From Octopus sinensis (Eukaryota), in assembly GCF_006345805.1 (NCBI RefSeq), contig NC_043014.1:36208001-36272000 (forward strand): 64,000 nucleotides of DNA, given 5' to 3'. Position numbers and translations under genes: made by a program. The notes under the pieces are model-generated. The model was not told the DNA's origin and made no database searches. It saw only the letters and a list, made by a program, of their open reading frames with translations. Numbering within the stretch: the first letter of the stretch is position 1; each line of letters starts with the position of its first letter. Positions 5,761-62,783 of this stretch are shown one piece after another.

Positions 5761-6119
5761 CTCATAAATATTGCCTGCGCGCTCACGCACACACACATGC
5801 ATACACACGTTTATATAATATGTTTTCAATAACAAAAATCAATGAGCAGAAACTGAATAAAGCACTGAATATAAGTTGCTGAGTTAAATATTTATTTCTC
5901 GGAATCTGTGATTTGACTGTAACTTGGAAATTTCGCAGAAGGTGCTTATCAGACAGTAACCTGCAAAAAGGAAAGCGTTGTCAAATTAGAAAGAAACATG
6001 TATGTATGTATGTATGTATGTATGTATGTATGTATGTATGTATGTATTTGACTTCAGCCAGCACTTGACAACCGGTGTTGCTTGTATACGGTCTCATAAC
6101 ATAGCGGTTCAGCAAAAGC

Positions 6120-7030: not shown

Positions 7031-7567
7031 TAGAGATAAAAAAAAAAATCACAGGGAAGAAAATGAAAAACAAACTAACCTGGTTGATTCTTTTATTTTT
7101 GTTTTGAGCTCCTTAACGTAGATTGCTAATAGAAAGCAGGAATGTTGCAAATGTTAAAATCTTAGTAATATTTGCATCATACAGTTTTTCTGTAATAGAA
7201 AGAAACAAAATATTTCATTATAATTTTGTTACAAAGCCAGAAATTTTAGGGAAGGGGGAAATCTATTACGTCCACTCCAGTGCTCAACTCGTACTTATTT
7301 TATCGACCCCCGAAAGGATGAAAAGCCGAGTCAACTTCGGCGGGGTTTGATTTCGGAAAGTAAAGCCGAACAAAATGCTGTTATGCATTTTTTTTTTCCT
7401 GCGGGCTCACGTTTCTGCCAGAACTCCGCTTCAGAAAAAAATTATCAAGGATATTGGGAATTTACATAAACATGTGTAAAAAATGAAAAAAAACCCCAAA
7501 AAAACTATAACAACAGGAAAATTATGGCAACCGAGTAACCCTACAGATCTTGAGTCACCTTGCTCAC

Positions 7568-8810: not shown

Positions 8811-9200
8811 GGGGGGTGTGTGGGGAAGAGAGAGAGAGAGGGTGCATGTGTGTGTATACATGTATGTATGAATGTGTCTTCGTGTTTGTTCCCCTACACA
8901 CACGTAACTTATCAGTTCAGCAATAAAGAACGATAGAATAAGTTCCAGTCACGATTTGTTCAACGGAAACCATTTAAGGCCATGGTCCAGCATGCTCTCA
9001 GTCCAATAGTTGCAAGAAGCAAAAGTTAAACTATATAAGATACCTGCATTAGCTGTTTGTGGGAGATAGTCTTTCAGCCAGTCTAGAAAGAAAAAAATTA
9101 AAAACAAAACTATAATATATAAACATTATAATTAAGGATTTATCTTAGTTTCCAGTGGAGTTTTGAAAATCCAAATTAGAAAGCGAAATCAAAGCAAAAT

Positions 9201-14757: not shown

Positions 14758-15169
14758 TACATATGTGTGTATGTGTGTAAAATACAAATGTAACCTATTA
14801 ATGTGTGTCATGTAACTACAAAATTTTGTGTTCAAATTAACATCACTATGATGTAGCTCTGAATTCCATTATTTTCTGAACGAATTTTCACTTTAAGCAA
14901 ACAATGTAAATATAGATATATTTGAAATGGTCAGAAAATATTGTATTTTAAGAACATAATTTTCATTTTTATACGCTTATGCATTTGTCCACAAGTGACG
15001 GGGAATCATGGGTTACTGAATAGTAATGAAGCCACTGCTGGCATAATGTTGAAATTAGAGTTTGTGAAGATACAAATAGTGAGTGAGTGCGTGAATTTAA
15101 TCTATATACATGTGTTTGTGAATGTATGTGTATCTGTGTGCGTGTGTGTATGTCTTGATTATTTTGATT

Positions 15170-17288: not shown

Positions 17289-17591
17289 CTGGTGGGATGA
17301 GTCTTTCAGAGAGTGTTTCGCCGTCCAGAAAGCATGTAAGAGTTGTTGAGCCAGCATTCCTGAAATTTAACGTATAATTAAAAATTGACACAGCTACATT
17401 GATACAATGGTCATATTGATCAACGCTCACGGAACGTGGAAATGCATTTACCCTAATGCGGGTTCTTTCAAACCATACAAAGTAAGTGGAATTTCTTGGT
17501 ACACCGATAAATGCTGTACATCTGAAGATCAATGTCTTGTTCACTTCAATTGGTGGGTTAAGAAGTTTCAGTTTACTTATGAAAGATCCCA
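17289..17591 (-). CDS. Ig gene A exon 3: C2-set-like Ig domain
   Basis: Acceptor ttcttttcag|tg, donor cca cca g|gtaagc; 303 nt, phase 1-1. VGSFISKLKLLNPPIEVNKTLIFRCTAFIGVPRNSTYFVWF...DHCINVAVSIFNYTLNFRNAGSTTLTCFLDGETLSERLIPP; C..W..C pattern and three N-x-T sequons. Confidence 0.88.
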
Positions 17592-19885: not shown

Positions 19886-20209
19886 CTTCAAAAGTCTTAG
19901 ATGGTGATGATTCTTCATTTGTTTTACATGAATAGTGTGTCGCATCTTCGCAACTAGCAACAAATTTCCAGCAGGTAATCTCACCTTTAGGACCAAATTT
20001 AGCTGGAGTACAATCGAAACCCTTTCGCTTGACTACTGGCTTAAACCTTTTTTCCGACCGGTCGAAATCACTTTGGAAAATAATGTTATCGTTTTGCATG
20101 AGAAAAAACTGAACGAAAAGATTTTTTACATAATACTGACAGGTTATACTTATTCCAGTGGAAGGTCCAACCTCAATAGTTTCAGGTTTCATTTTTATAA
20201 TCTTAATCC
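19886..20209 (-). CDS. Ig gene A exon 2: V-type Ig-like domain
   Basis: Acceptor tttatttatacag|gg, donor gaa g|gtcagt; 324 nt, phase 1-1. (W)IKIIKMKPETIEVGPSTGISITCQYY...KGFDCTPAKFGPKGEITCWKFVASCEDATHYSCKTNEESSPSKTFE; D-x-x-x-Y-x-C motif. Confidence 0.88.
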
Positions 20210-25478: not shown

Positions 25479-25527
25479 AGGCCGAAGTGTAAGAAGCCAT
25501 CATCAGCATCATCATAGCTAACAACAT
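25479..25527 (-). CDS. Ig gene A exon 1: signal peptide MLLAMMMLMMASYTSA
   Basis: ATG at 25527, donor gcc t|gtaagt (phase 1); hydrophobic 16-mer ending in S-A; two paralogs at 47076 and 61606. Confidence 0.85.
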
Positions 25528-32639: not shown

Positions 32640-32932
32640 GCACACACACACACACACACGAACACACACACAAACATTCATATGATATGTTTTCAATAAC
32701 AGAAGTCAACGAGCAGTAACTGGAGAAAGCACACAAGAGAAGGTGTTGAATCTAATATTTATTTCCGGGAAAATGTGAGTTGACCGTAACTAGGAAGTTT
32801 CGCAGAAGAGGTTCATCAGGCAGTAACCTGTAAAAAAGAATGCGTTGTCAATTTAGAAAGAAACTATGTATGTATGTATGTATGTATGTATGTATGTATG
32901 TATGTATGTATGTATGTATGTATGTATGTATG

Positions 32933-33023: not shown

Positions 33024-34110
33024 CTAAGTAGGTAGGTGTGTATGTATGACTATATGTATTTGTTTATGTATGTATGTATGTATGTATGTATGTATGTATG
33101 TATGTATGTATGTATATATGTATGTATTTGTCCCTAGCCAGCGCTTGACAAACGGCTTTGCTTGTATAAGGTCCCATAAGATAGTAGTTCAGCAAAAGCG
33201 ACCGGAAGAATAAGTACCAGATTTAAAGTTAAATAGTGATGCGTATTTTTCGGTATTTCAAGGTTATGGACAAGCATGGTCGCAGTCCAATGACTGAAAC
33301 AAGTAAACGGTCTATGTCCGAAATGGTGAGATGTTCAGTGTTCGAATGCCTTGCTTGATGAATGCTGATCCAAACATGAATGAATGATAACAACAATGGG
33401 ATTTGTTAAGAAAAGCAATGCAGTAAGCACAAACTAAATCAATAATATTTTAATATAAGAATAACAAAATCACAGAAAAGAAAATGAATTATATAATACG
33501 AACCTGGTTGATTCGGTTTTTCTTTTCCGAGATACTTCATGCAGATTGCTAATAAAAAGCAGGGCTGTTGCAAATATTAAAATCTTAGTAATAATATTTG
33601 CATTATACAATTTATCTGTAACAGAGAGAGAAAATATATTCCATTATAATTTTGGTACAAGGCCAGAAATTTTGGAGAAGGAGGAAATCGACTACATCAA
33701 CTCCAGTACTCAATTGGTACTTATTTTATCGACCCCGAAAGGATGAAAAGCCAAGTTAACTTCGGTGGCGTTTGAACTCAGAAAGTAAAGCAGGATATAA
33801 TGCTGTTAAGAATTTTTCCTGCGTGCTCACGATTCTGCCAGATCTCCTCCTCAGAAAAAAAAATAATCAGGGATATTGAGAATTTACATAAACATGTATA
33901 AAAAAAGAAAAATAACTATAACAGCAGGAAAATAATTATGGCAACAGATTTCCTTACTTAGGGGGAAATGCTCACCAGTAGTACCATGGTAAATGCTTTT
34001 CTCTCTTCTATGTTACTCAAACTACAGGCGCATGCTCATTTTAGGGCAATTCACTCGCGCCATTCATTCACCGCCTAATAAATGTACTGGGAGTAAACAG
34101 CTCCCTCTCC
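32640..34110. repeat. Second copy of the 5760-7830 block, including a decayed copy of the neighbouring gene's first exon
   Basis: Colinear similarity; aagcatttaccATG present at 33987-33985 (minus) with 9 extra nt before gtgagc; GC-rich core absent. Confidence 0.8.
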
Positions 34111-37575: not shown

Positions 37576-37583
37576 CTTACCTG

Positions 37584-37882
37584 CTAAATGAGTTTTTCAG
37601 TGATTGTTTTACCGCCCAGAAAACATGAAATGCTTGTTGTGCCATTATACGTCTTTTCTAAAGTATAATTATACACTGATACTGCTGCAGTGAAACACTT
37701 GCCATAATGTGTGATATGTTGAAACCTTTCAAAAACATCTACTCCAAATTTTGTTCTTACAAACCATATAAAATAAGCTTCACGAAGTGGTGCACCGACA
37801 TATGCAGTACATCTCAAGAACATTGTCTTGCCCTTTTCAGCAGGTGGGTTAAGAACTTGCAGCTTGTTTATGTAAGATCTCG
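37584..37882 (-). CDS. Ig gene B exon 3: C2-set-like Ig domain ending in TAG
   Basis: Acceptor ttcttttcag|cg; ARSYINKLQVLNPPAEKGKTMFLRCTAYVGAP...WF...GKCFTAAVSVYNYTLEKTYNGTTSISCFLGGKTITEKLI*; donor cag|gtaagt 3 nt after the stop. Confidence 0.88.
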
Positions 37883-38196
37883 CTGAAAAGAAAGAATCAA
37901 AATATGTAAAAGAATCGATATATGTAAAGTTTAGAACAATGGACCACACAATAACAGACTACGAGGTTTCACTGAATAAGCTACAAGGTTCAGACTAAAC
38001 AAAAATGTTTATCAGCGCTCTAAATATTCTTAATGCCGAGCCTTGTGAACTCGTGTTTCGAAGTGTTCAACCGTCGAACTTTTTAGTGAAAGCAGTGCAA
38101 AGGCTATTCGGAGCCGAATCAATAGCAATAAATACACAACACATGAAGGACACATTCATACGCATGTATATTTACACACACACGTATGTACGTACG

Positions 38197-38700
38197 TAGT
38201 ATGATCGATAAGTATCCGGACTGTTGCTAGAGTAACGAACTTAAAGTATGCAGAGTAAAGCTGCTTGACACAGATTGACCTTGAACTCTGCCGTGCATCT
38301 GCACTAAGTTTCAATGTTCTAGCTCACTTCCGGTGTTTACATCAGTGCTTGGCAGTAACGTGTGTAGCGTGTGTTCGTCGTCTTGACAATGACAGAGAAA
38401 GTTGAGCAGAGAATCTGCATCAAATTTTGCCAAGAGCTTGACGATACCTGCTCACAGGCCTACGCAAGTTTTCAAAATGTTTTCATCGCTCTCCACACAA
38501 TCGTGGAGATCTTGTGCAACTGAAACCCGAGTGTCTTTTTGGTCAACTGAAAGCAGTTTTGGCGCAAACTTGGCAGACACATGTTTCATGCCCAAATCTT
38601 CAGTGATAATGGAATGAACCGAACCGTAACTAATCTGCACATACTCTGATAACTCATAGATGGTGATTCGACGATTTCCTCTCACAGCTGCATGCACAGT
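38197..38700. mobile_element. Mariner relic with internal inversion
   Basis: Plus strand MTEKVEQRICIKFCQEL... up to about 38478, then minus strand NRRITIYELSE..ISYGSVHSIITEDLGMKHVSAKFAPKLL. Confidence 0.8.
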
Positions 38701-38739
38701 GGTGTACTAATGCCTGGAACTAGGTTTCTAATTACAGGT

Positions 38740-39330
38740 TTCTTATCATTCTCGGCCAATAGAGAGGTCTTCCCCTCTACAATGATGCTTTGGCCAGGAG
38801 CGGGTTTACTGAGAAGCTCACGTATGTTGATGACCCCCAAACACTCTCAGTATTAGGAGAAGGAGAACTATATGGTATAATCCCCTTTCAACCTAGACGA
38901 CTCCACCAACGTAGCTAGGGGCTTTCTGTCATTAATTAAGAAGTACTTCCCCAGAGGCCATAAGTATTACAAACTATTCAACCCCCATAATGTCATGGTG
39001 AGCTACTCTTACTTAGACAACATCGCATCTAAAATCGCACGCATCAACAGACGTAAACATACACCCACACTACCCCAATCCCCAACCTGCAACTTCCGAA
39101 ACACCACAATATGCCCTCTAGAAGGCTCTTGTCTTTCAAGGGCCGTAGTATACAGAGCCACCCTTACACCATCCGATGGCATTACTATATGGGTATGACA
39201 GCTAATGATTTCAAAGGTAGATACTCCCAGCATATGCACTTGTTCAGATCCAGGGATAGAGAGAACTCTACTTACCTGTCTCGTTTTCTCTGGGGACTCC
39301 GTGATCTCCGAGATGAATACCAACTACTAG
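38740..39330 (+). mobile_element. Penelope-like (Naiad-type) linker + GIY-YIG relic
   Basis: YNDALARSGF, IWYNPPF, VMVSYSYLDN, CNFRNTTICPLEGSCL..VVYRA, YMGMTANDFKGRY..H...NSTYLSRFLW. Confidence 0.85.
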
Positions 39331-39852
39331 CTCGGTCTCCGCGAAAATCTGTATTAAGTCGATTATATCGATCCCAGTGCGTAACTGGTACTTATTTAAG
39401 TGATCCCGAAAGGATTAAAGGTAAAGTTGACCTCGGTGGAATTTGAACTCAGAACGTAAAGACAGACGAAATACTGGTAAGCATTTCGCCCGGCGTGCTA
39501 ACGTTTCTGCCATCTCGCCGTCTTTAAATACCTATTTCTTTACTACCCACAAGGGAATAAACGCATAGAGAACAAACAAGGACAGACAAACGGATTAAGT
39601 CGATTATATCGGCCCCAGTGCGTAACTGGTACTTATTTAATCGACCCCGGAAGGATGAAAGGCAAAGTCGACCTCGGCGGAATTTGAACTCAGAACGTAG
39701 GGGTCGACTTGCTCGACTAAAGGCGGTGCTCCAGCATGGCCGCAGTCAAATGACTGAAACAAGTAGAAGAGTAAAAGAATACATCATTGATCTAAAATCA
39801 ATGGTGGAAAAAAAAAAGGAAAAAGAAAAGAAAAATAATTAGTAAAACTGAC

Positions 39853-40176
39853 CTTTTAAAGCTTTAACCTTTGAAGATTCGAGATTTGTTTTACATGAGT
39901 AATATGCCGCATCATCGCAAGTTGGATTAAATTTCCAGCAGGTAACCTCATCATTTTTAATATGATCTAGAGTACAGTCAAAACCCTTTCGCTTGATCAC
40001 TGGCAGAAACTTCCTTTCCTCCTCGACATAATGAGTTTTGAAAACGATATAATTCAGATTTTGAACGAGAGCAAAGTAAAGAACATTTTTTAGATTATAC
40101 CGACATGTTATAGTCATTCCAGTCGTGTATCCAAAATCAATAGTTTCAGAAGGTTTCGTATCTACAATCTCCATAG
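39853..40176 (-). CDS. Ig gene B exon 2: V-type Ig-like domain
   Basis: Acceptor tttctctacag|ct, donor aaa g|gtcagt; 324 nt. (P)MEIVDTKPSETIDFGYTTGMTITCRY...KRKGFDCTLDHIKNDEVTCWKFNPTCDDAAYYSCKTNLESSKVKALK. Confidence 0.88.
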
Positions 40177-40249
40177 CTGTAGAGAAAGAAACATACATCA
40201 GAGACAGATGTTATAAAACAATATATATATATATATATATATGTAGTTA

Positions 40250-40440
40250 CAGAAGAGAGAGGAAGGAAAAAAAGGGAGAAAGAAAAGAAGGAGGAGGAGG
40301 AGGAGGAGGAAGAGGAAGTGGAAGAGGAGGAAGAGGAAGAGGAGGAGGAGGAGGAGGAGAAGAAGAAGAAGAAGAAGAAGAAGAAGAAGAAGAAGAAGAA
40401 GAAGAAGAAGAAAACGGAAGATGAGGAGAAGAAGGCAAAA
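40250..40440. repeat. (GGA)n/(GAA)n tract upstream of the exon-2 acceptor of gene B
   Basis: Directly visible. Confidence 0.9.
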
Positions 40441-40528
40441 CAGGACTAATTAAAAATAACGGGTGTTCATTTGAATATAGATTACATTTATCCACAAATA
40501 AAACTTTGTAGTTAGTTTTTAATATTTA

Positions 40529-40919
40529 CTAGCAGTATCGCCCGGCGTTGCTCGGGTTTGTTTCGACCCTTTAGAATTGGAATTTTTGAAAAGTAAAAAA
40601 ATTTGCATTATGCTGCTTGTTAGTCTCTTTAAGTGAACATTTTTCTGGTTGAAATACACCGAAAAATGGCGACAATGCAGTCAAAAAAATCGTAAAACAT
40701 AGGGATTTTCATAGAAAAAAAAGCACCTTTTTGATGTAAATAATTTTTGATGTTAACATGGTCCGATTTGAATTTTTTCTTCTCCGGAAAGAAGAGCAAG
40801 CCTTCTATCATACTCTCAATTTTGGTCAACTTACCCCGCAGGGTCTCGGAGGAGATAGTGTTAGTTGAAGGCTACCAAACCTGTCAGACACAGACAGACT
40901 TCAGCTTTATATATATAGA
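40529..40919 (-). mobile_element. Non-autonomous Helitron
   Basis: Minus strand A|TC...cccgagcaacgccggg...CTAG|T; the empty site is seen in gene A at about 20485. Confidence 0.85.
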
Positions 40920-41148
40920 TTATCATAATAGCATACATGTGCCGTCAAAAATGCCGACAGTTTTATTAATGATGGAAAATGGTGCATCAACACAGTGGGG
41001 AAACAGTTGAAAAGCAGAAAACAATCTAGTATATATATGCACATACACAGAATTGATGCACTTGGAGAATTAGATACGGTCGTAGCGTCTCAGTTGAAAA
41101 TATCAGCTACATAATGTATCGGTGTGTATATGTATATATACAAACACA

Positions 41149-41191
<43 letters not shown>

Positions 41192-41198
41192 CACACAC

Positions 41199-41248
<50 letters not shown>

Positions 41249-41259
41249 TATATACATAT

Positions 41260-41290
<31 letters not shown>

Positions 41291-41574
41291 GCATTTATAT
41301 ACTTGGATACATAGATAGATACATATCTTTTATTTATGTATATACATAAATATACATTTATTTATAGATATTTCTCTCTCTCGCTCTCTTGCTCACTCAC
41401 TCTTCCTCTCTCCCTCTCTCTCTCTCTCTCTCTCCCTCTCTCTCTATATATATAGACATACACACACACACACACATATATATACATAAAAACACATAAA
41501 ATAAGAATGAAAAACACGTTAATGACAATTATCAGGTAGTCAGCATGGAAAAAGCAATTTATATATTAAATTAG

Positions 41575-41616
<42 letters not shown>

Positions 41617-41617
<1 letters not shown>

Positions 41618-42118
41618 TAGCAGTATCGCCCGGCGTTGCTCGGGTTTGTAAGGAAATAACTATATAAGCATTTTTAGAGAGTTACTTCCCTTATAGATGC
41701 CAATTCGGGCTTTCTTAGCCATTTCTGTTTTGGTGTCTTCAAACCATGAAGTCGTTGTTCTAAAAGAACGCTGGTCTCCTTGACAACGCATTACGACGTT
41801 GATTTCTTTACACTCCCTTCCCCACAGCTTCACGAGGGAGGGAAGGGGGAGAAGCAAACAGGTGCAGCTGTGAGCGTGGACGCCAACTCCGCCGCCATCG
41901 ACACACGAAAAATTATGCATTAAAATGGAATAAAAAATGATGTTAAATTATTTTTAAAATCGTAGACTCATTGTTGACGCGCGCTAATAGCCAGACGGGC
42001 TCGATATGAATCACGACTATAAGATACCCGAATTTGGTTAAACTGCACCGCAAAATGTGGGAGGAGTTAGGAATCTAAATCGAAGGGGACAGACACTCAC
42101 ACAACTAGAGTTTTATAT
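41617..42118 (-). mobile_element. Non-autonomous Helitron
   Basis: Same 3' terminus ctagcagtatcgcccggcgttgctcggg; 5' end runs into a TA tract. Confidence 0.8.
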
Positions 42119-42173
<55 letters not shown>

Positions 42174-42279
42174 ATTTTAAGGGAGAAAGTCAAAACAAGA
42201 CTTATCACCTCCATATTGAATTAATGTCCAAACATTACGAATCTACCGAAACGACTCCATAAATACATGCGATTGAAAG

Positions 42280-42630
42280 CGGGCTAGTGAGAGGATATTT
42301 AAAAAGACACCACATCAATTGCAAATTAGCTAATTTCGAGATTAATATCTTAAAATCTTATGGAGTTTTTACGGTAACTTCGTAATGCTTAGACATCAAT
42401 TCAGTATGTACCCGAACTCTGTCATGTAGTCCCGTTCCGGTTTCGCCATATAGTACTCTTTACATTGTCGACAAGTTGTACAGTAAATTAAGTGTTTTGT
42501 TTTACAGTTCATGTTTGCATTGATTTTGAAAAGCACATTGCTTTTAAAAGAAATTTGTCCACCATCTTCAATGTATTCACAGGTTCCGCATCGAGGGTGC
42601 CTGCAGTTTTTAACTTACATTGTTTCAATG
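42280..42630 (-). mobile_element. Penelope-like GIY-YIG endonuclease relic
   Basis: CRHPRCGTCEYI...NANMNCKTKHLIYCTTCRQCKEYY.GETGTGLHDRVRVH. Confidence 0.85.
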
Positions 42631-42651
42631 TTAGATGTTAATTTCACCTTC

Positions 42652-42889
42652 ACTCTTTTACTCTTTTACTTGTTTCAGTCATTTGATTGCGGCCATGCTG
42701 CAGCACCGCCTTTATTCGAGCAAATCGACCCCCAGGACTTATTCTTTGTCAGTCTAGTACTTATTCTATCGGTCCCTTTGCCGAACCGCAATGTTACGGG
42801 GACATAAACACACCAGCATCGGTTGTCAAGCGATGTTTGGGGTGGGGGTAGACAAATACAGACACACAAACACACACACACGCACACAC

Positions 42890-42922
<33 letters not shown>

Positions 42923-43012
42923 CATATACGGTCTTCTTTCAGTTTCCGTCTACTAAATCCACTCACAAGGCTTTGGTTGGCCCGAGGCTATAGTAGAAGA
43001 CACGTGCCCAAG
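42652..43012 (-). mobile_element. SINE family A, head truncated
   Basis: Reverse-complement match ending at gcccaagg. Confidence 0.85.
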
Positions 43013-43055
43013 GTGTTAGTTGAAGGCTACCAAACCTGCCATACACAGACAACTT

Positions 43056-43133
<78 letters not shown>

Positions 43134-43147
43134 CATACATACATACA

Positions 43148-43177
<30 letters not shown>

Positions 43178-43178
<1 letters not shown>

Positions 43179-43671
43179 CTATACATATAAAACTCAACTT
43201 GTGTGTCTGTGTGTATATCTGTGTGTGTCTGTGTGTTTAACTTCCCGGCACATCTCCTAACTAACAAATCGTAGAACCACCAAAAGTGGGTCACTTAAAG
43301 TTTAGGCGAATGAAAATTGAACTGCGCTATTTCCGTTCCGAAATTCATTTCGCAAGTGCAAAAATCGATAATGTGTTTGTTATCCCATGCATTGAATAGT
43401 GAACTTTACTCAGTCAGCTGTTTGACGTGAACTGTGTTCACCACGCGTGCAAGCATGCGTAAATTACATGAAAAATAAAAAATCAATATATAAAAACGAA
43501 TCGCCGTAAACATTGTAGAAATTCGGCAAAGAAATGAATTTTCGGGATGTAGCCTGGAGGGTTTTTCGTATTAATCGTTTTGACTTTGTGAACACATACC
43601 AATTGTTTTCATTAAATTTTTAACGCTTTGAATTAAATGTGACCATTTTGCAAAGCCGGGCAATAATGCTA

Positions 43672-43672
<1 letters not shown>
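43178..43672 (+). mobile_element. Non-autonomous Helitron (different subfamily)
   Basis: A|TC start, gcaaagccgggc..CTAG|T end. Confidence 0.7.
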
Positions 43673-43751
<79 letters not shown>

Positions 43752-43764
43752 ACTCTTTTACACT

Positions 43765-44142
43765 TTATACTCTTTTACTTGTTTCAGTCATTTGACTGCG
43801 GCCATGCTGGAGCACCGCCTTTAGTCGAGCAAATCGACCCCGGGACTTATTCTTTGTAAGCCCAGTACTTATTCTATCGGTCTCTTTTGCCGAACCGCTA
43901 GGTGACGGGGATGTAAACACACCAGCATCGGTTGTCAAGCAATGCTAGGGGGACAAACACAGACACACAAACATATACACATACATATATATACATATAT
44001 ACGACAGGCTTCTTTCAGTTTCCGTCTACCAAATCCACTCACAAGGCATTGGTCGGCCCGGGGCTATAGCAGAAGACATTTGCTCAAGATGCCACGCAGT
44101 GGGACTGAACCCGGAACCATGTGGTTGGTTCACTCCCGCGCC
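43765..44142 (-). mobile_element. SINE family A
   Basis: Reverse-complement match with a short deletion in the head. Confidence 0.88.
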
Positions 44143-44657
44143 TATATATACATATATATATGTATATATACATATTTATAAAAGAACGATATTATTTCTG
44201 AAAATAATAACGTTAGTGGCCGCGAGCGTAAAGACGTATAGGCAAATTAATAATCATGTATATAAGATATATAAATATATTCATTTTTCTGATATAATTA
44301 TTAATTAGGGATCGTTTAATTTGTCTCACAGATTTTTTAATTATTTTTTTTATGCAAACACTTTGAAATTTTGTATACTGGTGGAATTTCTCACCTAGAA
44401 CACGGTCTACATTGAACATTTTTGGCAATATTTTGTATTTCAGAAGATATTTCGTGTTTGAGTTGTCGGATTTTGGGTAATTTTTGCCAATCAACGACGT
44501 GTATTCAGTTGAAGAAAGCTACTGCTGTTTGCGATAGTCATCGAAGAGGAACAGCTTTCGGGTTATCTCTATTAAATTTAACCACTCTGTTCTGTTTGTA
44601 TGTCGAGCGATGTATGTAGATATATGTAGATGTATGCACATTATACATGTGCATATG

Positions 44658-44728
<71 letters not shown>

Positions 44729-44814
44729 AGAGTTCACGAAAAAAACAAAAGACGAAGATAGGTGGTGTAGAAAACAAACAGATGTATTAGTATAACGCTC
44801 AGGAATTGAAAAAT

Positions 44815-44850
44815 CTTTTACGTTTCGAGCCTACGCTCTTCTACAGAAAG
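44815..44850 (-). ncRNA. Minimal type-I hammerhead-ribozyme-like motif
   Basis: cttt-CTGTAGA-a-gagc gtag gctc-GAAAC-GTA-aaag: perfect stems I and II, one core change (A6 to U). Confidence 0.5.
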
Positions 44851-45837
44851 AACACAGAAAGAGACGAGGAGAGAAAAAATTGTGTGTAGTGGCTACCGAA
44901 TGTGCGTGTGTGTGTATGTGCATATATGTATGTATATATATATATATATATATAACATAAGCATATATACATATATATAACATATGCATATATACATATA
45001 AATAATATAAATTTCTATTTGAAATATATATTTTATATAGATAGATTGAAAGATATGTGTGTGTGTTTGTGTCGTCGCGCGCGCGTATAATTTTTTTGGC
45101 ACAATGAGAATATGACAATTATTGTGTAGGATGAAACGCATTCATATTTGGTCTCATCCACATTTGGTATATATATTTGCCCTGGATCAACATCAAGAAA
45201 TTCCGCTGCGTACACACACGCACGCAGCCGTTCTAGAATTTGGACCTTGAGATCTCCATTTCCAGCGACTTCGAGGGCCACCTCCCAGTGGTGTCGGGCG
45301 TCAACGAAGAGCCCTCGACTACAACAAAACGACCAAAGTTTTTCTTTTTCCAAGGTCTGGGGTCTCCCGCCCCTAAGCCCTAGACCATCACCTAGTTACC
45401 CTTACCCGTCTTGTTGCTTAACAACAACAACAACAAACACGCACGCATACACACACACATACACACATACACACACAAACACATACGCACAAATGTACAC
45501 GGGTGCCGTAAATTAAAATCATAGAATCACACACCTGTATGAATTGGATGCCCAACCTTCCCTGTTAACTTAAATGTAATCTTTCTTCGACGGGTTCTAC
45601 TCTCTATATTTTATGATTAAGAGTTTAATTTTTTATTATATATTCGCGGACAACCGTGGCTATCCCCATTAGCTCGTTATAACCAAAATACATTGAGCAT
45701 GAACAACTTGACTGGAAGAACTCAGTATATCTAGAGTGACATCATCTTTTTTATGCATGTACTTTGATGTATCACAAAAGGCACAGTTTGATGGAACACA
45801 ACTAGATGCACAAAATCCTACCTATAAGAGACAGTTG

Positions 45838-46271
45838 GGATCTTTTCGGTTTGAACGGCAGTTTTAAATTTTTTTCCACGTAACTAAACACTTTTAAACT
45901 TCGTATACTGGTAGAATGTGTTTATAAAACATCTTTTTCTCTTGGCTTTATTGCGAAAATTCTATAGTTTGTAAGATATTTGTTGTTGTTTTTTCTTCAA
46001 TTTCTGCAACTTCAACCAATCGATGACATCTATTAAGGTAAAAAACATTCTGTGCCGTATGAATATGTCCCTCGTTTAAGAAACAGATTGGGTTTATTTA
46101 CATTTGTTAACAAAAAAAAGATAACCTTCCCCCCACCCTTAACACTAACCCTAACTAACACTAACCCCAAAACAGATTGAAATGCAATAGATCGATACTA
46201 GGATCATAATTATGGGTGACAATTTCATATGACATCGCTAGAAAAAACTGCCGTTGAAACCGAAAAGATCC
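45838..46271 (+). mobile_element. Full-length Merlin-like MITE with 8-bp TSD
   Basis: gacagttg|GGATCTTTTCGGTTTGAACGGCAGTTTT ... AAAACTGCCGTTGAAACCGAAAAGATCC|gacagttg. Confidence 0.88.
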
Positions 46272-46338
46272 GACAGTTGCAGAATGGTTGTCGAAATGAT
46301 CGTCACACTTGTGATAAATCTATCTTCCGTTTCCTTCA

Positions 46339-46414
<76 letters not shown>

Positions 46415-46644
46415 CATATATATGGGAATATGTATGTATGTATGTATGTCGAAGAAAGAGAAAGAGCCGGTTTCTAACCTAGATCTAAGGCTCCTTCATT
46501 GGAATTTCAACATCGACAACAGGAAGTTTTTGTATGTATGTATCTATGTGTGAATGTGCATATGCAGATTTGTTTGTTTTGCTTTATGTATTATTCTAAT
46601 GCATATAGTTGCATATCTAGACATGCTCATATGTATATATATAT

Positions 46645-46868
46645 CTCTTTACTACCCACAAGGGGCCACAGAGAGGACAAACATGGGCAGACAAACGGAT
46701 TAAGTCGATTATATCGACCCCAGTGCGTAACTGGTACTTAATTTATCGACCCCGAAAGGATGAAAGGCAAAGTCGACCTCGGCGGAATTTGAACTCAGAA
46801 CGTAGCGGCAGACGAAATACCGCTAAGCATTTCGTCCGGCGTGCTAACGTTTCTGCCAGCTCGCCTTA
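46645..46868 (-). mobile_element. SINE family B
   Basis: Reverse-complement match to 15879-16105. Confidence 0.88.
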
Positions 46869-47075
46869 TATATGTATATATATATATATGTATGTATGCA
46901 TATGTATATATATATGTATGTATGCATGCAAGCATGTATGTGTGTGTATATGTGTGTGTATGTGCACGCGTGCGTACGTATAGTGCGTCTTGTGACGATC
47001 AAAGTGTGATATCTATGACAAGAAGGTTCAATGTTGTAATTGAAGAAAATATTATTCCTCTTGATATTAACTTAC

Positions 47076-47124
47076 GGGTCGAAATGTGAGAAGCCATCAT
47101 CAGCATCATCATAGCTAACAACAT
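47076..47124 (-). CDS. Ig gene B exon 1: signal peptide MLLAMMMLMMASHIST
   Basis: ATG at 47124, donor acc c|gtaagt (phase 1). Confidence 0.85.
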
Positions 47125-47790
47125 TGTTGGTCTTGAGAAACAAGTATAAAGCAGAAGGAGAAGTGATTGTCGGCTTCCAGAAACCGGAACTGTTACGAAA
47201 TGATGTGTCTGATACAAAAAGTGGTGTCGAAATAGTCAAACACAACAAAAATAGAGGAAAGCGCAATATATGTAAGTGTGAATAGGAGTGGGGAGTGAAA
47301 CTTGAAGTGTGAGTGAAGCTGAGATAGTTCCATCTTTCTGTTTCTTTCTCTTTTTCTCTTTCTTTCTCTCTCTCTCCCTCTGTCTCTCTTCTGCTTCGAG
47401 AAGAAGGCAGGTAGAACATATAGAAAACAGTTTGACAGGAAGTTTAAGTCAACACACACACACACGCACACATACAAGTACACACACATGCACGAACGCA
47501 CACACGCACGCCTACACACATACGCACGTACAAATGATGAAAAGGAAGATGGAGAATTTCAAAGTATTGAGAGAGTGAGTGAGAGAAGTATTTTGGTCAA
47601 AAAAAAAAGAAGAAAAAAAAAAGACGCCGACTTAGAACGCGGGAAAGGAAAGTGAAGGAAAGTTATAAGGCTATGAAAATAAGAAAGGGAGAGAAGAAGG
47701 AAGATTGACAAGGAAGAGTTACAGTAAAAGATTATGAAGAACGTCATGGAAAAGGGAGAGGGAGAGAGTGAAAGGGAGAAAGATAGATCG

Positions 47791-47841
<51 letters not shown>

Positions 47842-48137
47842 AAGAGAGAGAAAGAGAGAGAGAGAGAGTAAGAGAAAGTGAGAGAAACGGTAAAAAACAT
47901 CTGCTTTCTTTTACTACAGTGGGTAGGTATTTTTTGCTAATTGATTTTTTTTAGTATGGCACTACACTGGACACTGGATGTAGAGGCTGATCTAGCTGCC
48001 TTAACAAGTTCCTGCCTTTCTTCCAACTCGGCTGATTCATGTCAAAATAAATCGTTGGAGGTGCTGGGTTTATCAGGATTTTGTCCAAGCGCCTTCTTTA
48101 TTGCTGAGTCACATAGGCAGTTAGGTAAAAATGTATT

Positions 48138-48500
48138 GGATCTTTTCCTGTTGAACGGCAGTTTTCAACACAATTTCTAGTTAACTAAACACTTTTAAAC
48201 TTCGTATACTGGTAGAATGTGTCAAAATATAAACATTATTTTTCACTTGGCTTTTTTGAGAAAAATTGTAATTTGTAAGTTTTACACGTAGTTAATTTTT
48301 CGAATTTTAACCAATCCTATCGCCTCAAATAAAACCTTTTTATCACTTGGCTTTTTTTTGAGAAAATTGTAATTTGTAAGTTTTCACGTAGTATTATTTT
48401 CGAATTTTAACGCAATCCTATCGCCTCTATTGAGCTAAAATCATTTGCTGCGTCTAACTGAGACAAACACCTGTCACTAACCCCTAACCCTCACCCTCTA
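48138..48500 (+). mobile_element. Diverged Merlin-like MITE copy with internal tandem duplication
   Basis: ggatcttttcctgttgaacggcagtttt terminus; about 48235-48330 repeated at 48335-48430; ccctaa repeats. Confidence 0.65.
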
Positions 48501-49034
48501 CCCTAAATTTATAGCCTTCGTTTTTTTTCTTAATTGCTAACACGTGTCACCAAGTAAACTTACTGTTGAAGCAGATTAGGTTGAGAATGAAAGCTGTACG
48601 TTTATCGGCTCCTTTCTCTTCGAAGTATATGACACTGTGTTCAGCGACGAGCTCTCAGTTTCTTCCTCAGAATATTTAATATCTCTGCTTAGTTGATTGG
48701 CATTCCTTTTCGCTGGATCCCTTATACTACTTCTTGAATGTTCTCAGTTCATCCTGCCACAGCTGTATTTGGTAACCGAACAGACTTAGCTGTATGATTT
48801 ATTGATGTTACATACTTCAATGAAGCTGAATTAACACTAATTAATAGAAAAATAGATTATAAACTTTACTGGACTATAACAGACTCGGGATCTTTTCCTT
48901 TTGATGGACGGAATTTTCTAGTTAACTAAACAATTTGAAACTTCGTATACTAGTAGAATGTGTCAAAAGAAAACATTATTGTAAACAAAATTGTAATTTG
49001 TAAGTTTTACGTAGTTTAATTCTTCGAATTTTAA

Positions 49035-49900
49035 CCAATGAAATACCAGGTACCCCATATCAGGGCCAACACTCTAGTTTGTAGACTTTGCTTAAAAGAC
49101 GCTCTCAAAATTCTAACCCACTACTCACCACATTTGCTTAATAAATACAACGGGGCCTTCAATCCGTGTAAGCACAAATTCTTCCGCACTTTTAAATTCT
49201 TTCATAAATCTAAATGTAAGCTCCCCTCTACAAATAGTACCCGCATACATACCCCTATGTTCATTAACGCATACCCCTTCTATATCTCTATAACACTTAT
49301 TTCTATCTTATGTCTTACCTCATATCTATCTATCGTACCTCATCACACTATAAGATAAATATTAATTCTTTGATTTATCCTGAATTTATTTTAAACCTTA
49401 ACCCCAAAAATAACTCTACAGCCACAGACCTTAGCCAGGACGGACACAAGCAATTACTACCGAATTTCCTCCCCAACAACTTTAGACTTTGAAACTACCA
49501 GACTACTCTCTTTAAATTCCTTTTATTTCGCTCTATTTTTTAACCCTATTTTCTTTTACTCTATCTTCCTCTACCTCCTTATCCTCTCTCTTATCTTCTT
49601 GGCTACCCCTTACACAATTCTTAGACATATACACTTTACTTTATCATATAGCCAATCCTTAAAATCTTCCCTACTTCACTCTGTTATTGTTATTGGATGT
49701 ATTCCACTGAAACTAGGTAAATATAAGCCTTCGAACAGAGACGTCAGTGGCGACACCTGCGGGGTCTGACTGCGCTACATTGACAAGGGGCAATACTCCG
49801 AAACGCGTCTGTAGCTGTCGGACTGGCAGTGTGAAGCGGCTGACCTCCTTTGTTCGAAGGTTATAATGGATACAGATCGTGTATCAATAGCTATCTTAAG
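49035..49900 (+). mobile_element. Penelope-like (Naiad-type) 3' end: end of GIY-YIG plus terminal repeat
   Basis: CRLCLKDALKIL...LLNKYNGAFNPCKHK, then a pyrimidine-rich tract and a hammerhead-like motif. Confidence 0.7.
49774..49815 (+). ncRNA. Degenerate type-I hammerhead-ribozyme-like motif
   Basis: gctaca-TTGACAA-gggg caata ctcc-GAAAC-gc-GTC-tgtagc: 6-bp stem I; core differs from CTGACGA at two positions. Confidence 0.5.
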
Positions 49901-50042
49901 GCGGTGGCCTCATGGAGCTGACCAGCGGCAGCGATTATTCTTATATCTAGAATGTGCCATATTAATATGGCGATAACAATTAATTTCCAGTAAACGCTGT
50001 CGTAATCTCTTTTATAGAGACTTATAATTTTAATATTTCTAA

Positions 50043-50088
<46 letters not shown>

Positions 50089-50226
50089 CATATAGATACA
50101 CATATATATAGATAGATACATACATACATATATCCACGTATATCATATATGTACATGTATTTATAAAGATTTTATATGTGTGTATATGTAGATATTTATG
50201 CATACATATATATATGCATATGTATT

Positions 50227-50257
<31 letters not shown>

Positions 50258-50318
50258 CTCTCTCTATATAATTATATATATATTATATATATATATATGT
50301 ACACCACACCACACACAG

Positions 50319-50357
<39 letters not shown>

Positions 50358-50712
50358 GATAGATACATACATACATACATACATACATACATACATACAT
50401 ACATACATACATACATACATAGATGCGTATATGTGTACATGTTATTTAGATTAAGTTTAATTAGGTATTACAATTGAGGCATCTTGTTAGAACGAAATTA
50501 TGTGCACACTCAAGCAATATTAGGTGAGTATCAAACTACATAGAATTTTTCCCACCCGATATTCATGCAGTGTATGCAGATGGCATGATCCAACTTAGTG
50601 AATAAATTCGCTCTTGTTTCTTCGGCACATGCTTTATATAAAGATACTTTTCCTAATACCACCGAAGTGCAGATTCCAGGGTAGGTGAGAATAATATAAA
50701 TGAGTAGCAAAG

Positions 50713-51226
50713 ATGTATAAGTGTCAATTAATTGTGGCCGTTTTGAGCGACTCCTTCAATTTATTAATGAAAGCATTACCTCATTATAAAGAAAACTGTT
50801 CTCATCAGATGACCACACAGACCTCAAACATAGAGGAAAAGTTAGATATTTAAACTTATTAATATCATCAATAGAGAACAAATATTTACAATGATTCTAC
50901 AGCTAAATTATTTGGCAGATTCTGCTATAAGCTTTAAGCTTATCTTATAATAATTTTACTTGTTCCGTTACTTAGCCCGTCGGTAACGTTTTCATGTGAT
51001 TAGAGAAAGGGAAGCAGATTCTGCCAAAAACATCAGCGGTGGAATCATTGTAAATATTTGCTCTCTATTGATGAGATTAATATGTTTAAATATCTAACTT
51101 GTCTTTTATGTTTGAGATGTATGTGATCATCTGATGAGAACGGTTTACTTTCTAAAGATGTAATGCTTTCATTGATGAATTAAAAGAGTCGCTCGAAACG
51201 GCCGTAATGAATTAACACTTATACAT
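50713..51226. mobile_element. Foldback element / MITE with about 214-bp inverted arms
   Basis: 50713-50926 is the reverse complement of 51013-51226 with scattered mismatches; 86-bp spacer. Confidence 0.85.
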
Positions 51227-51304
51227 ACATATACATACACGCACACACATAACACACACACACACACACACACACGCACATATATATATATATATATATT
51301 ATGG

Positions 51305-52270
51305 TTGTGGAAATATTGAGACCACCCCTCAAGTGACTAAAAGGTGGTCTAACTCATTGATATAAAGCAAAGAACTCTGGGTGATTGACAGATTGGGTTG
51401 GTAAGCAGTGCACTGTGAGCCGTGGTTGAGAGCGTTGAATCTTGTGAAACAGTAATAGTAGTGCGTCGTGTAAATAATTTCTTTCTTCCCTGCTTCGTTA
51501 TATATAATACAAAAATAAGTGGCACGAGTTGTTCATAGCTTGCGTTACACGTTTAAAAAAAATTTTTGATACGAAACCAAACGAAAAATTCGTTTAACAT
51601 AGAGAACTTATTGGCCTCTGTTGTGAAGTTGCAATAGCAATAGCAACAACAACAACAACTACAGCAGTAGCAACAGTTACAGCAGCAGCTGCAACTACAA
51701 GAGCAGTAACAGCACTTGAAATCCGAAAATACTTCAAGATCGTACTCGCCGGACAGCGAAGCAAATTCAATTGAAGAATTCAGCTATAATCCAGAAGAAG
51801 GGATTACCTTCTCTGCGTATTTTCGTAGATACGAAGAAATCTTCAAAACAGTTGGTGCGACGAGAAAAAAACTACTACTACTTTTAAGAAAGTTATCCCC
51901 CGCAGAACACGAAAAATATTGTAATTATATTCTGCCAAAAACTTCAGGTGATATTTGCTTCGACGACATAATTAATTCTTTATCAAAAATTTTCGGTGAA
52001 AATAGTTCCCTCTTCAATACTCGCAGGCAATGTTTAAATTTTGTAGAAAAAGATGAAGAATTCGCCGGAGTCCTTAATAGAGAGTGTGAGAAATTCAAAT
52101 CGAATGAATTGACCCCGGACATGTTCAGAAGTTTAATTTTTATTCAAGAGCTTACTGCAAGTAAAGATGCAAATATACGTTCCCGGATATTAACAAAATT
52201 AGAACAGGACCAAATATTAACTCTGCAGGCAGTAGCAGGAGAATGTCAGAGGATTATAAGTCTGCGACAT
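51305..52270 (+). mobile_element. Gypsy-type LTR retrotransposon 5' relic: LTR, PBS-like site and gag
   Basis: tgt...aca segment (about 51305-51510), tggcacgag PBS-like motif, ORF 51716-52336 with FSYNPEEGITFSAYFRRYE...LLRKL..AEHEKYCNYILPK...IRSRILTKLE typical of K02A2.6-like gag. Confidence 0.8.
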
Positions 52271-52789
52271 GACATTATCTTTTCGCCAAATTTCCACTTC
52301 AATAACATGAAACGCTGTAAATTTAAATATACTTAGCCTTGCCATATAGAATAATGTATTTTAATGCATTTTTTTTGCTCTTAACTACTATTCAGTTGTA
52401 CATGAGATTTACGATCACCTGGCCACATTACTACACAAATACTTGGCTAAATACCTTCTGTAAGGCCTTTCTTTAATAGGAAGTAGTCCACAAGTGACGG
52501 AGTTTCGTGGGTTATCGAACTGAGCCCCCAACAATAATGAAGCCACCGCTTTTAGATGCAAGACAAAGTCGTCTTGTATAATTTGAACCCGAGAAGTAAA
52601 CGGACATGACTAAATTTACAAAACATTTTCTACACCACTCTTATTCATTTTCCTATTCTACCGCCCTTTTTATCCATAAGACTAAACTTATATGTTTCTT
52701 AGCAGTCACATTGATGCCATAATACTGAAATAGGAAGTTGTCAAACTATAAATAGAGTGTGTGTGAATTTAATTTATATATACATGCGC

Positions 52790-52836
<47 letters not shown>

Positions 52837-52879
52837 GTGTATTCTCTTCTGTTGTTACTTATTTTAATTCTTGTTCTGA

Positions 52880-53740
52880 AGAAGGAGCTTGCTGTTACGC
52901 TAACAGATTTTTATATTCATAATGTGCAAGATATTTGTTTGATTTTTTTTTCTGAAAGCCCTAACTTATCCAGATTGTCACTTAGGCATTTACTCACGAA
53001 ACTTAGTGCACCAATTATTATTGGTAGAAATGCGAACCTTCATATGTAACCTGGCTGCTTCGGAGAACTTGTCCATAGTTATCACTATTCTCTTTCATTT
53101 TCAAAAAGATATTCACATGAACGGGTCAGCTGACCTCTACGACGATACATACCTTGTTTCTTGTCTGTCCCCAATAACTATATCTGGCCTGTTACTTTTA
53201 CAATTGATAGATGTTTTGATGGGAATATTCCACCTGTATTCCTTGTGTTGATCATAGTCTATGTAATCAATAAGAGGGAAATTCACTATATTTATTCCAG
53301 GACAGTTTTTCTTTCGAAAGGCCATTGTATATTTTTTTGCGACAATATCGTGTCGCATGTGTGTGCGGGTGGGGGTGGTGCTTCGGTGACACTTTTTGGC
53401 AGTTGTTAATCACAATTGATTACACCATACATTACGTCGAACTGTATACCGTAGAATAAGGTTTGCAAAAAATGCACTGAGATGTAGCAGTAAATTAACA
53501 TATAGCTATTAGGAGACTTTTCGAGGCTTTTCGACCTGCGAGAAATGGCAGCAAAATCCCAATCTTTTCTGGACATATTTGATATAGTCCTAATTGTACT
53601 CTGCTTTAAAACCATAGTCGTGATTGCCACAGCTGGAATATCTTTAGGTATAGGTCTGCTCAGACAGATCAAACATCAAAGACGTGAGACTAAATAGCAA
53701 CAATAATAACAAGAACATGCAAAAGCGCTAATCAAAGAAA
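52880..53740 (-). mobile_element. RLE-type non-LTR retrotransposon relic 3' of Ig gene C exon 3 (best preserved copy)
   Basis: RHDIVAK, WNIPIKTSINCKSNRPDIVIGD, VVEVS*P, PIIIGALSFVSKCLSDNLDKLG. Confidence 0.8.
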
Positions 53741-53754
53741 ATTTACTTACTTGC

Positions 53755-54056
53755 TTAGTTGAAGAGTAATTTAGTTAGAGTTTGGCCATTCACAAAACAT
53801 GTGATGTTTGTTACGCCAAAGTCCTCCTGTTTTACAGTGTATTTATAAATTGACGCTACTGGAGTTAAACACTCGTCACGAGATGGAACTTTAATGTTAT
53901 CCTCATGTAAACTTGTATCATTACGCTTTCTTTTAAACCATAGAAAGTCTTTAATGCCAAAAGGTGCTGGGACATATGCTAAACATCTGAAGATCGCTGT
54001 CTTGCCCACTACAATGGGTAGGTTAACAACTGTTAGTTTATCTAGGTGAGATCGCG
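53755..54056 (-). CDS. Ig gene C exon 3: C2-set-like Ig domain ending in TAA
   Basis: Acceptor ttcttttcag|cg; ARSHLDKLTVVNLPIVVGKTAIFRCLAYVPAP...LWF...DECLTPVASIYKYTVKQEDFGVTNITCFVNGQTLTKLLFN*; donor gcaa|gtaagt 4 nt after the stop. Confidence 0.88.
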
Positions 54057-55079: not shown

Positions 55080-55397
55080 CTTTTAAAATCTTAGTTTCTG
55101 AAGTTTGGGCATATGCTGTAAATGAATAGCTTGCGGCATCCTTACATGTGGGGTTAAATTTCCAGCAGGTAGTCACACCTCTATAATCAGTGATTGTAGA
55201 ACACTCGAAACCTCTACGCGCCTCTTTATAATATGAGCGTGCATCCCAATGATATCTAAATGTGAAAACAATATCGTTGTTTTGCATGAGGTGAAAGTTA
55301 ATAGGACCTAGCAGCTTAAACTGGCATATTATAGTTATTCCAGCAGTGTTTCCAAATTCAATATAATGAGGAGGTGAGATGTCTAGAATTCTAATAT
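55080..55397 (-). CDS. Ig gene C exon 2: V-type Ig-like domain lacking the F-strand Cys
   Basis: Acceptor tttactacatag|at, donor aaa g|gtcagt; 318 nt. (Y)IRILDISPPHYIEFGNTAGITIICQF...RRGFECSTITDYRGVTTCWKFNPTCKDAASYSFTAYAQTSETKILK. Confidence 0.86.
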
Positions 55398-55467
55398 CTA
55401 TGTAGTAAAAAAAGAAAACAACAACAAAAAACAGATAGTTTTTATGAAAAAAGTATAAATGTAGTTA

Positions 55468-56135: not shown

Positions 56136-56220
56136 GGGGGTGTTGATTTGGATATGGATTACTTTTCCATAAATTGTGTTTTTTTAACGTTTATTGCTAT
56201 ATGTGTAATGGTGCCGTTGT

Positions 56221-57046: not shown

Positions 57047-57106
57047 TCAATCACTGGCTAGTGATGAAGAACTCATTCCACTCGCAAAATACTATATCCT
57101 GTGTAT

Positions 57107-61605: not shown

Positions 61606-61654
61606 AGGCCATAGTGTAGGAAGCCATCATCACTATCATCATAGCTAGCAACAT
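61606..61654 (-). CDS. Ig gene C exon 1: signal peptide MLLAMMIVMMASYTMA
   Basis: ATG at 61654, donor gcc t|gtaagt (phase 1). Confidence 0.85.
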
Positions 61655-62737: not shown

Positions 62738-62777
<40 letters not shown>

Positions 62778-62783
62778 GTATTT

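Follow-up and report, generated by a model that had tools for sequence, protein, structure and literature searches.

Among mammals, the CEACAM/PSG genes form a tandem array of the immunoglobulin (Ig) superfamily, hereafter abbreviated as IgSF, in which an N-terminal V-like domain is followed by further Ig domains. Their last exons determine whether a product is anchored by glycosylphosphatidylinositol (GPI), spans the membrane or is secreted, and they evolve rapidly in a lineage-specific manner. LILRA3 is a secreted paralogue within a cluster of membrane Ig receptors, having lost its anchoring part while its ectodomain is intact. Cephalopods lack antibodies, and their diversified recognition molecules are poorly understood. 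Here we analyse three neighbouring minus-strand genes, called A, B and C, which belong to a tandem array on Octopus sinensis chromosome CM016876.1 and fall within a stretch of 64,000 nucleotides (nt) that we call the window (RefSeq contig NC_043014.1 of assembly GCF_006345805.1, forward-strand positions 36,208,001 to 36,272,000; no N in the sequence). B and C have a stop codon at the end of their third exon, where A is open. The account we favour, with a probability of roughly 60%, is that of a tandem family of two-Ig genes in which the stop of C is old, that of B arose separately and a filter on the location of stops explains why both lie in the same place.

By analogy with the CEACAM/PSG genes, the octopus family would combine a tandem IgSF arrangement, anchored or secreted variation by the last exon and fast evolution. 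It differs from them in having no detectable sequence relationship, in the extra cysteines of its domain 1 and in being found, in our searches, in octopods only, so that the likeness would be one of convergent architecture. C may similarly be compared with LILRA3 as a secreted paralogue in a surface Ig cluster, although the lineage and the number of domains are different and the truncation consists of a stop at the boundary of the last ectodomain exon.

Family plan and the ends of exon 3

Protein searches at E <= 1e-3 produced 44 representatives of the family, and those with looked-up names belong to O. sinensis, O. vulgaris, O. bimaculoides and Argonauta hians. Judging from these sequences, it is an uncharacterised tandem family of octopods, seen here in octopods alone. 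A is matched at 100% by the NCBI protein P0001 (O. sinensis LOC118766814, 191 amino acids, aa). The O. bimaculoides loci L003, L007 and L004 were matched to A, B and C, respectively, and contain the orthologues P0002 (LOC106880708) of A, P0016 (242 aa) of B and P0004 (LOC106880713 X2, 223 aa) of C. P0003 (LOC106880709) is a further O. bimaculoides paralogue with the exon structure of the family, for which no orthologue was seen within the window. These four O. bimaculoides proteins are all annotated as 'uncharacterized protein', and literature searches on the LOC numbers, the UniProt identifier and octopus IgSF expansions found nothing specific.

The gene plan, obtained by mapping O. bimaculoides proteins onto their own loci and onto the window, comprises a signal peptide in exon 1 (MLLAMM..., ending in phase 1), a V-like Ig domain 1 in exon 2, Ig domain 2 in exon 3, a stalk of 12-13 aa in exon 4 and one of two alternative last exons. 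Exon 5a (such as DKLCGANTITKFFIFATYLVFIGICR before the stop) is hydrophobic, lacks a cytoplasmic tail and resembles a GPI signal, whereas exon 5b (GYCSMNTFCETSKLQSTHSFPEINI before the stop) is hydrophilic. In A, P0003, P0005, P0007 and P0008, exon 5a has the form ...D/S-A-N-x-x-T-K followed by about 14 hydrophobic residues and a final R, a GPI-signal-like tail that suggests a putative GPI anchor; the distant members P0024 and P0038 have true transmembrane segments with cytoplasmic tails. All family introns are in phase 1, and thus the end of exon 3 is the exact end of the folded ectodomain. Exon 1 is intact in A, B and C alike (ATG, leader and gtaagt donor). Exon 4 was found in the open members P0002, P0003, P0005 and P0007; none was found in the B or C lineages, the B interval of O. 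bimaculoides being in part an assembly gap. The original prediction postulated an anchored or longer ancestral receptor. A longer ancestral form with a hydrophobic C-terminus is borne out by the O. bimaculoides paralogues and orthologues, whose coding sequence runs on past the same phase-1 donor, first into exon 4 (12 aa) and then into a hydrophobic last exon of 26 aa.

Exon 3 of A, B and C are paralogous to one another in both blastn and tblastn comparisons. Direct reading of the minus strand confirmed their ends as first described. That of A is 'aga ctc atc cca cca g/gtaagc' (last base 17289), open and in phase 1. That of B is 'aaa ctc att TAG cag/gtaagt' (last base 37581), 1 nt shorter than in A (302 vs 303 nt), while that of C is 'ctc ttc aac TAA gca a/gtaagt' (last base 53751), with the stop in frame and the donor still in phase 1. 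Both boundaries of exons 2 and 3 are in phase 1 in A, in C and in the genes of O. bimaculoides; B exon 3 lacks one nucleotide. There is one lesion each in B and C.

The original prediction derived both stops from a common 'tta gca g' ancestor by different mutations. A maximum-likelihood tree of 24 family members groups B with P0016 (100/99); this pair is joined first by A, P0002 and P0029 (91/88), then by P0003 (93/98). C pairs with P0004 (99/99), and the two group with P0005 and P0012. Given that these relatives of B and of C all have an open exon-3 end, the stops require two changes. A tree constrained to unite B, C and their orthologues, a group that we named after the tree had been seen, is worse by 34.9 log-likelihood units (approximately unbiased, AU, test p = 0.011). 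Moreover, the tail following 'ctc' has three codons in the A/B type and four in the C type. Open relatives of C have 'aaa cag gca g/gt' (P0005) or 'aac ata aca g/gt' (P0007), and the simplest origin of the C stop would be a change of CAA or CAG to TAA in such a four-codon tail; relative to the A-type consensus 'atc cca aca g', the B tail has three substitutions and a 1-nt deletion. The different origins of the two stops are therefore upheld, whereas these tail lengths and contexts leave the shared 'tta gca g' ancestor unsupported.

A single origin, either in a B/C ancestor that already had the stop or by a short gene-conversion tract from the exon-3 end of C to B, would account for the pattern T..A..GCA in both tails, for the gtaagT donor of O. 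sinensis B and C (gtaagc or gtaaac elsewhere) and for the fact that 'taa gca g' less one A becomes 'tag cag'. We consider it highly improbable, because B and C are not sisters and their joint clade is rejected by the AU test, the C tail is one codon longer than that of B, and a 13-nt conversion tract would still require two later changes. In addition, P0004 lacks the T at donor position +6, so that this base is recent in C.

The shared location of the two stops is more than chance, for a random single stop in each 264-codon coding sequence would place both in the last three codons of exon 3 with a probability of about 1e-4. At this point the folded ectodomain gives way to the stalk and anchor. 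An AlphaFold2 model of P0004, built from a family alignment of 21 sequences, has a mean predicted local distance difference test (pLDDT) of 91.6 and a predicted template modelling score (pTM) of 0.79, and consists of two all-beta domains with the last strand at residues 215-220 of 223. The stops of B and C, which lie directly after this strand, thus leave the whole ectodomain intact. A Foldseek search of PDB with the model returned 796 matches at E <= 1e-3, the top ones all being two-Ig chains of Fab, T-cell receptor (TCR), CD4 D1D2 and butyrophilin. The Foldseek probability reached 1.00 for many two-Ig chains, and the best global fits were with the IgV-IgC ectodomains of butyrophilins (BTN2A1/BTN3A1; query-normalised TM-score, TMq, 0.50-0.58). 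Sequence identity is 8-15%, and the octopus proteins have neither a B30.2 nor a cytoplasmic domain; these are matches of fold and not of orthology.

In contrast with the structural comparison, sequence profiles detect little. No Pfam family lies above threshold in A, B or C (the best being ig at E = 0.46), none of the 21 members scanned matches a Pfam Ig family at E <= 0.01, and the family profile finds only weak matches to FcgammaRII and Fab among PDB sequences (E ~0.006). C148, W163 and C210 are invariant in domain 2 of the 21 members; in domain 1, which contains extra cysteines, C41 and the DAAxYxC110 motif are nearly invariant, O. sinensis C having Phe in place of C110. The predicted two-Ig nature of the family is consequently supported by the modelled structure, with no curated sequence profile matching. 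Only stops at the end of exon 3 would leave both domains whole and secretable, and their shared location is best read as a survivorship filter rather than a coincidence. Independent truncation is securely supported for C and provisionally for B.

Gene C and the divergence of the Ig exons

The orthologous locus in O. bimaculoides has the same exon-3 stop (L004 18673-18978, 'agc aac taa gca a/gtaagc'), P0004 ending with NITCFLDGKTLTKLLSN (TLTKLLSN) and C with NITCFVNGQTLTKLLFN before the stop. The flanks of C and P0004 are collinear at 88-93% identity. Since the two genes are orthologous and have the same stop, this is older than the split between the species and an assembly artefact is impossible. 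The stop predicted in C is thus real, and its product of 223 aa contains the leader and both Ig exons, terminating directly after the last strand. In both species the gene combines a signal peptide and a complete ectodomain with no in-frame anchor, as predicted for a secreted paralogue.

The coding sequences of C and P0004 show 120 differences in 666 aligned nt, no further stop and a single indel, which is in frame. When the same substitutions were placed at random, the frame stayed open in 0.7% of trials (p 0.007), and about six gaps would be expected in the coding sequence at the rate of orthologous introns (about one gap event per 100 nt). The terminal stop is the only lesion of C in either species, and on these comparisons C looks maintained as a gene in both.

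The Ig exons of the three orthologue pairs are only 78-85% identical between species, compared with 88-94% for introns and flanks. Exons 2 and 3 of C are 78% and 85% identical to those of P0004 and its introns about 92%; exon 1 of C is 96% identical and exon 5a of B 98%. The excess divergence of Ig exons has p values from 2e-4 to 5e-13, the ectodomain exons changing about twice as fast as the adjacent introns. This pattern points to diversifying selection on the ectodomains, which would affect the truncated C as much as the intact A. (The ratio of nonsynonymous to synonymous changes, dN/dS, was rejected as a pseudogene test, as it is about 1 for the intact A/P0002 pair too.)

The gene of O. 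sinensis departs from its orthologue in two respects. The canonical F-strand Cys of domain 1, present in P0004 and nearly all members, is Phe (SYSF) in C. Moreover, the O. bimaculoides locus has a 5a-type exon 4.1 kb downstream of P0004 (L004 23097-23174), but the C-to-B interval of the window contains no equivalent of it, and we found no exon 4, 5a or 5b for C. These losses of the Cys and of exon 5a suggest that O. sinensis C may now be obligately anchorless and is perhaps drifting. The argument that stops so close to the last junction would escape nonsense-mediated decay is of doubtful relevance for O. sinensis C because no downstream exon is detectable. An AATAAA motif at 53296, within the former intron, may mark a poly(A) site at which C ends. 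The sequence of events that we propose begins, before the split between O. sinensis and O. bimaculoides, with a nonsense change (CAA/CAG to TAA) that would have made C a two-Ig protein secreted constitutively. C would still be an expressed, working gene, given its intact frame in both species and Ig exons that change faster than introns, and O. sinensis would later have lost the downstream anchor exons.

Gene B and its anchor exon

As read from the O. sinensis assembly alone, B would encode a product of 224 aa comprising the leader and both Ig exons, with the stop after the last strand. Introns are collinear with those of the orthologue P0016 at 90-93% identity, and exons 1 and 2, the only leader and Ig exons of B that are comparable, are intact between the species. 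The segment of O. bimaculoides matching window 38015-36600 is a gap of N (L007 17179-19144, about CM046620.1:16308929-16310894). The orthologous exon 3 lies within this gap, which is the probable reason why P0016 skips it. The O. vulgaris loci L006 and L008 contain upstream P0008-like copies only, and P0010, the sole O. vulgaris model with exons of B, in which a cryptic donor within B exon 3 is joined to a cryptic acceptor within A exon 3, is uninformative on the B exon-3 end. When proteins of exon-3 size or read-derived open reading frames (ORFs) were searched for matches to B or C, the one sequence recovered was P0029, a Logan contig of A-like type. (P0010, from a 144-kb range of GCA_951406725.2 that takes in the exon-3 end of the B orthologue on OX597833.1, combines P0008-like copies, B exon 2, half of B exon 3 and half of A exon 3.)

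The last exon 5a of B is 177/180 identical to the O. bimaculoides copy (100% in the core) on a background of about 91% (p ~1e-4). Its usual stop TAA is GAA in both species (L007 20812-20955), and the exon continues into a conserved basic extension of 23 aa (HEVSRKRKTESTR...). This stop loss common to the two species implies that exon 5a has been coding in the B lineage, and the extension could make a membrane-spanning segment, followed by a short cytoplasmic tail, out of what resembles a GPI signal. If exon 3 is skipped, exon 2 of B joins exon 5a in frame. The observations on B would fit a recent real stop, an anchored isoform without exon 3 beside a secreted protein of exons 1 to 3, or a T missing from the assembly.

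The last possibility was already raised as a caveat in the original prediction, and the caveat stands, for the TAG is preceded by a run of TTT (37588-37586) and a 68-nt (TG)n microsatellite (37573-37506) directly follows the gtaagt donor, starting 8 nt beyond exon 3. The stop of B could then be an error of assembly or polishing, or else a very recent or polymorphic allele, the true gene having ...att tta gca g/gt as an ordinary anchored member so that only C would be truncated. One added T would place B exactly back in phase 1, the rest of its splice sites and ORF are intact, the repeat is only 8 nt away, and the high identity of exon 5a is what would be expected if exon 3 were normally spliced to exon 5a. 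On the other hand, TTT is short for a homopolymer error and real indels are common, as seen in the gap events of orthologous introns. The B tail differs from the A-type consensus at 4/10 positions even with the extra T, and exon 5a could stay in use via an isoform without exon 3, such as those of the O. bimaculoides models P0016 and P0009. Weighing these points, we allow a missing T about one chance in four. Under the account that we prefer, B would have acquired its stop separately, in another sequence context that includes the 1-nt change in length, and, if this stop is real, would produce a secreted two-Ig protein of exons 1 to 3, its conserved exon 5a being translatable only when exon 3 is skipped.

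Several points weigh against this account. The stop of B is seen in the O. sinensis assembly only, the O. bimaculoides exon lying within the gap, and the conserved anchor exon of B fits an intact anchored gene better than an old truncation. No O. sinensis NCBI protein for B or C was found in the protein searches, and the change of Cys to Phe in O. sinensis C could mark relaxed constraint. Pairwise dN/dS, which ranges from 0.73 to 1.29, is about 1 even for the intact pair of A and P0002 and is therefore uninformative as a test of constraint. Finally, the fast divergence of the Ig exons could be due in part to gene conversion among paralogues instead of positive selection.

Part of this evidence would also be compatible with B and/or C being pseudogenes, whose stops would be the first lesions of dead copies and whose proteins would not be made: the lack of O. 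sinensis protein models, the dN/dS near 1, the absence from O. sinensis C of the canonical cysteine and of downstream exons, the early stop in exon 5b of B and its missing exon 4. Yet since it acquired the stop, C has preserved a frame of 223 codons, the signal peptide and every splice site in both species, with a chance of 0.007 for the open frame and one in-frame indel against the six or so gaps expected. Its Ig exons evolve faster than the neutral flanks, as in the intact A, whereas a dead gene would drift at the rate of introns, and its O. bimaculoides orthologue is modelled as protein-coding by NCBI. Random decay is also unlikely (about 1e-4) to have placed stops at the domain boundary in both genes. 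We thus regard the pseudogene explanation as distinctly unlikely, and retain that of an old secreted C with a separate stop in B.

Gene A, soluble forms and the surrounding locus

A had been proposed to function as a receptor with B and C as soluble decoys or ligands. Such a system is not supported, since A itself has both the anchor-type exon 5a and the hydrophilic exon 5b (table 1), and soluble forms would thus already be a trait of the family. The NCBI model of A (LOC118766814) looks incomplete, as it begins with a Met inside exon 2, leaving out the exon of the signal peptide, and ends with an exon that lies within a stretch of about 7.5 kb (window 16669-9139) missing from the O. bimaculoides orthologue; the conserved exons 4, 5a and 5b are further downstream. 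A conserved block upstream of exon 2 (20483-20697 in A, 40913-41131 in B) was considered as a candidate for exon 1 and rejected, being without a clean signal-peptide ORF, and the real exon 1 lies 5-7 kb upstream.

Table 1. Exons of genes A, B and C in the window (positions counted from the first nucleotide of the window; a slash marks the exon end)
Gene	Feature	Position	Strand	Comparison or remark
A	Exon 1, signal peptide MLLAMMMLMMASYTSA	25479..25527	-	Absent from NCBI model
A	Exon 2, Ig domain 1	19886..20209	-	
A	Exon 3, Ig domain 2, 303 nt, open, phase-1 donor	17289..17591	-	
A	Last exon in NCBI model, VKIRSENNGIQSYIIVMLI and stop	14832..14890	-	Within ~7.5-kb stretch without counterpart in O. 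bimaculoides orthologue
A	Exon 4, stalk DWLKDYLPQTANA	9044..9082	-	Sole exon-4 copy in window; same peptide in O. vulgaris model P0010
A	Last exon 5a, EKLYDANITKILTFATFLLSISNLR and stop, hydrophobic, GPI-signal-like	7113..7189	-	
A	Alternative last exon 5b, GYCLISTFCEISKLQSNHRFREINI and stop, hydrophilic	5884..5960	-	
B	Exon 1, signal peptide MLLAMMMLMMASHIST	47076..47124	-	
B	Exon 2, Ig domain 1, 324 nt	39853..40176	-	O. bimaculoides orthologue L007 12899-13234
B	Exon 3, Ig domain 2, 302 nt, TAG 37586-37584, cag/gtaagt	37581..37882	-	
B	Last exon 5a, DKLYNANIITKILIFATALLFISNL with basic extension HEVSRKRKTESTRFVLYNSFSFL and stop	33470..33615	-	
B	Alternative last exon 5b, hydrophilic type, shortened by early TAG, GYCLMNLFCETS and stop	32790..32827	-	
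C	Exon 1, ATG and signal peptide MLLAMMIVMMASYTMA, phase-1 donor gtaagt	61606..61654	-	96% identical to P0004 exon 1
C	Exon 2, Ig domain 1, 318 nt, phase 1 at both ends	55080..55397	-	78.3% identical to O. bimaculoides orthologue, flanking introns ~92%
C	Exon 3, Ig domain 2, 306 nt, TAA 53757-53755, 4 nt before retained gtaagt donor	53751..54056	-	

Other public models of the family merge separate tandem paralogues, the isoforms of LOC106880715 included, and the X1 and X2 'isoforms' of O. bimaculoides LOC106880713 are different neighbouring genes. In O. bimaculoides an intact P0003 (L002 10001-17016) has the A orthologue on one side and a MORN-repeat gene on the other. In O. vulgaris just 7.6 kb separate the MORN gene from the end of the model carrying the A exons. 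Because of this proximity, a paralogue of the P0003 type may be missing in the lineage of O. vulgaris and O. sinensis; the window ends before that point.

Two families of short interspersed repeats, with 80-98% identity between copies, occupy introns and spacers of the window and are also present in the O. bimaculoides and O. vulgaris loci. Copies of the first, of about 400 nt, are at 6642-7030, 10317-10702, 12759-13164, 16191-16616, 18432-18880, 26388-26789, 42659-43015, 43770-44129, 57105-57483 and 62517-62973; the second, of about 240 nt, is exemplified by 6121-6358 and has some ten related copies. A Pfam scan of the intron ORFs derived from repeats gave nothing usable. In addition, low-complexity tracts of CTT/AAG type in intron 1, just upstream of exon 2, produce long spurious ORFs rich in Ser, Leu and Phe in C (55445-56190) and B (40250-40450).

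A wider interpretation would see the array as an octopod-specific, positively selected two-Ig recognition system, acting in innate immunity, self/non-self discrimination or gamete interaction, whose anchored members have been repeatedly made secreted under selection, C being an old case and B a young one, and in which the alternative exons 5a and 5b provide the same switch between anchored and soluble forms within genes. We regard this interpretation as tentative and rather unlikely in its entirety.

The locus contains a lineage-specific two-Ig family that escapes Pfam, with members of the anchored type and at least one that would be anciently anchorless, and its analysis has corrected the public gene models at several points. 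The presence of a soluble paralogue within a cluster of surface Ig genes would follow a theme that is familiar in animals. For the octopus, A, B and C provide concrete candidate genes for studies of immunity or cell recognition.

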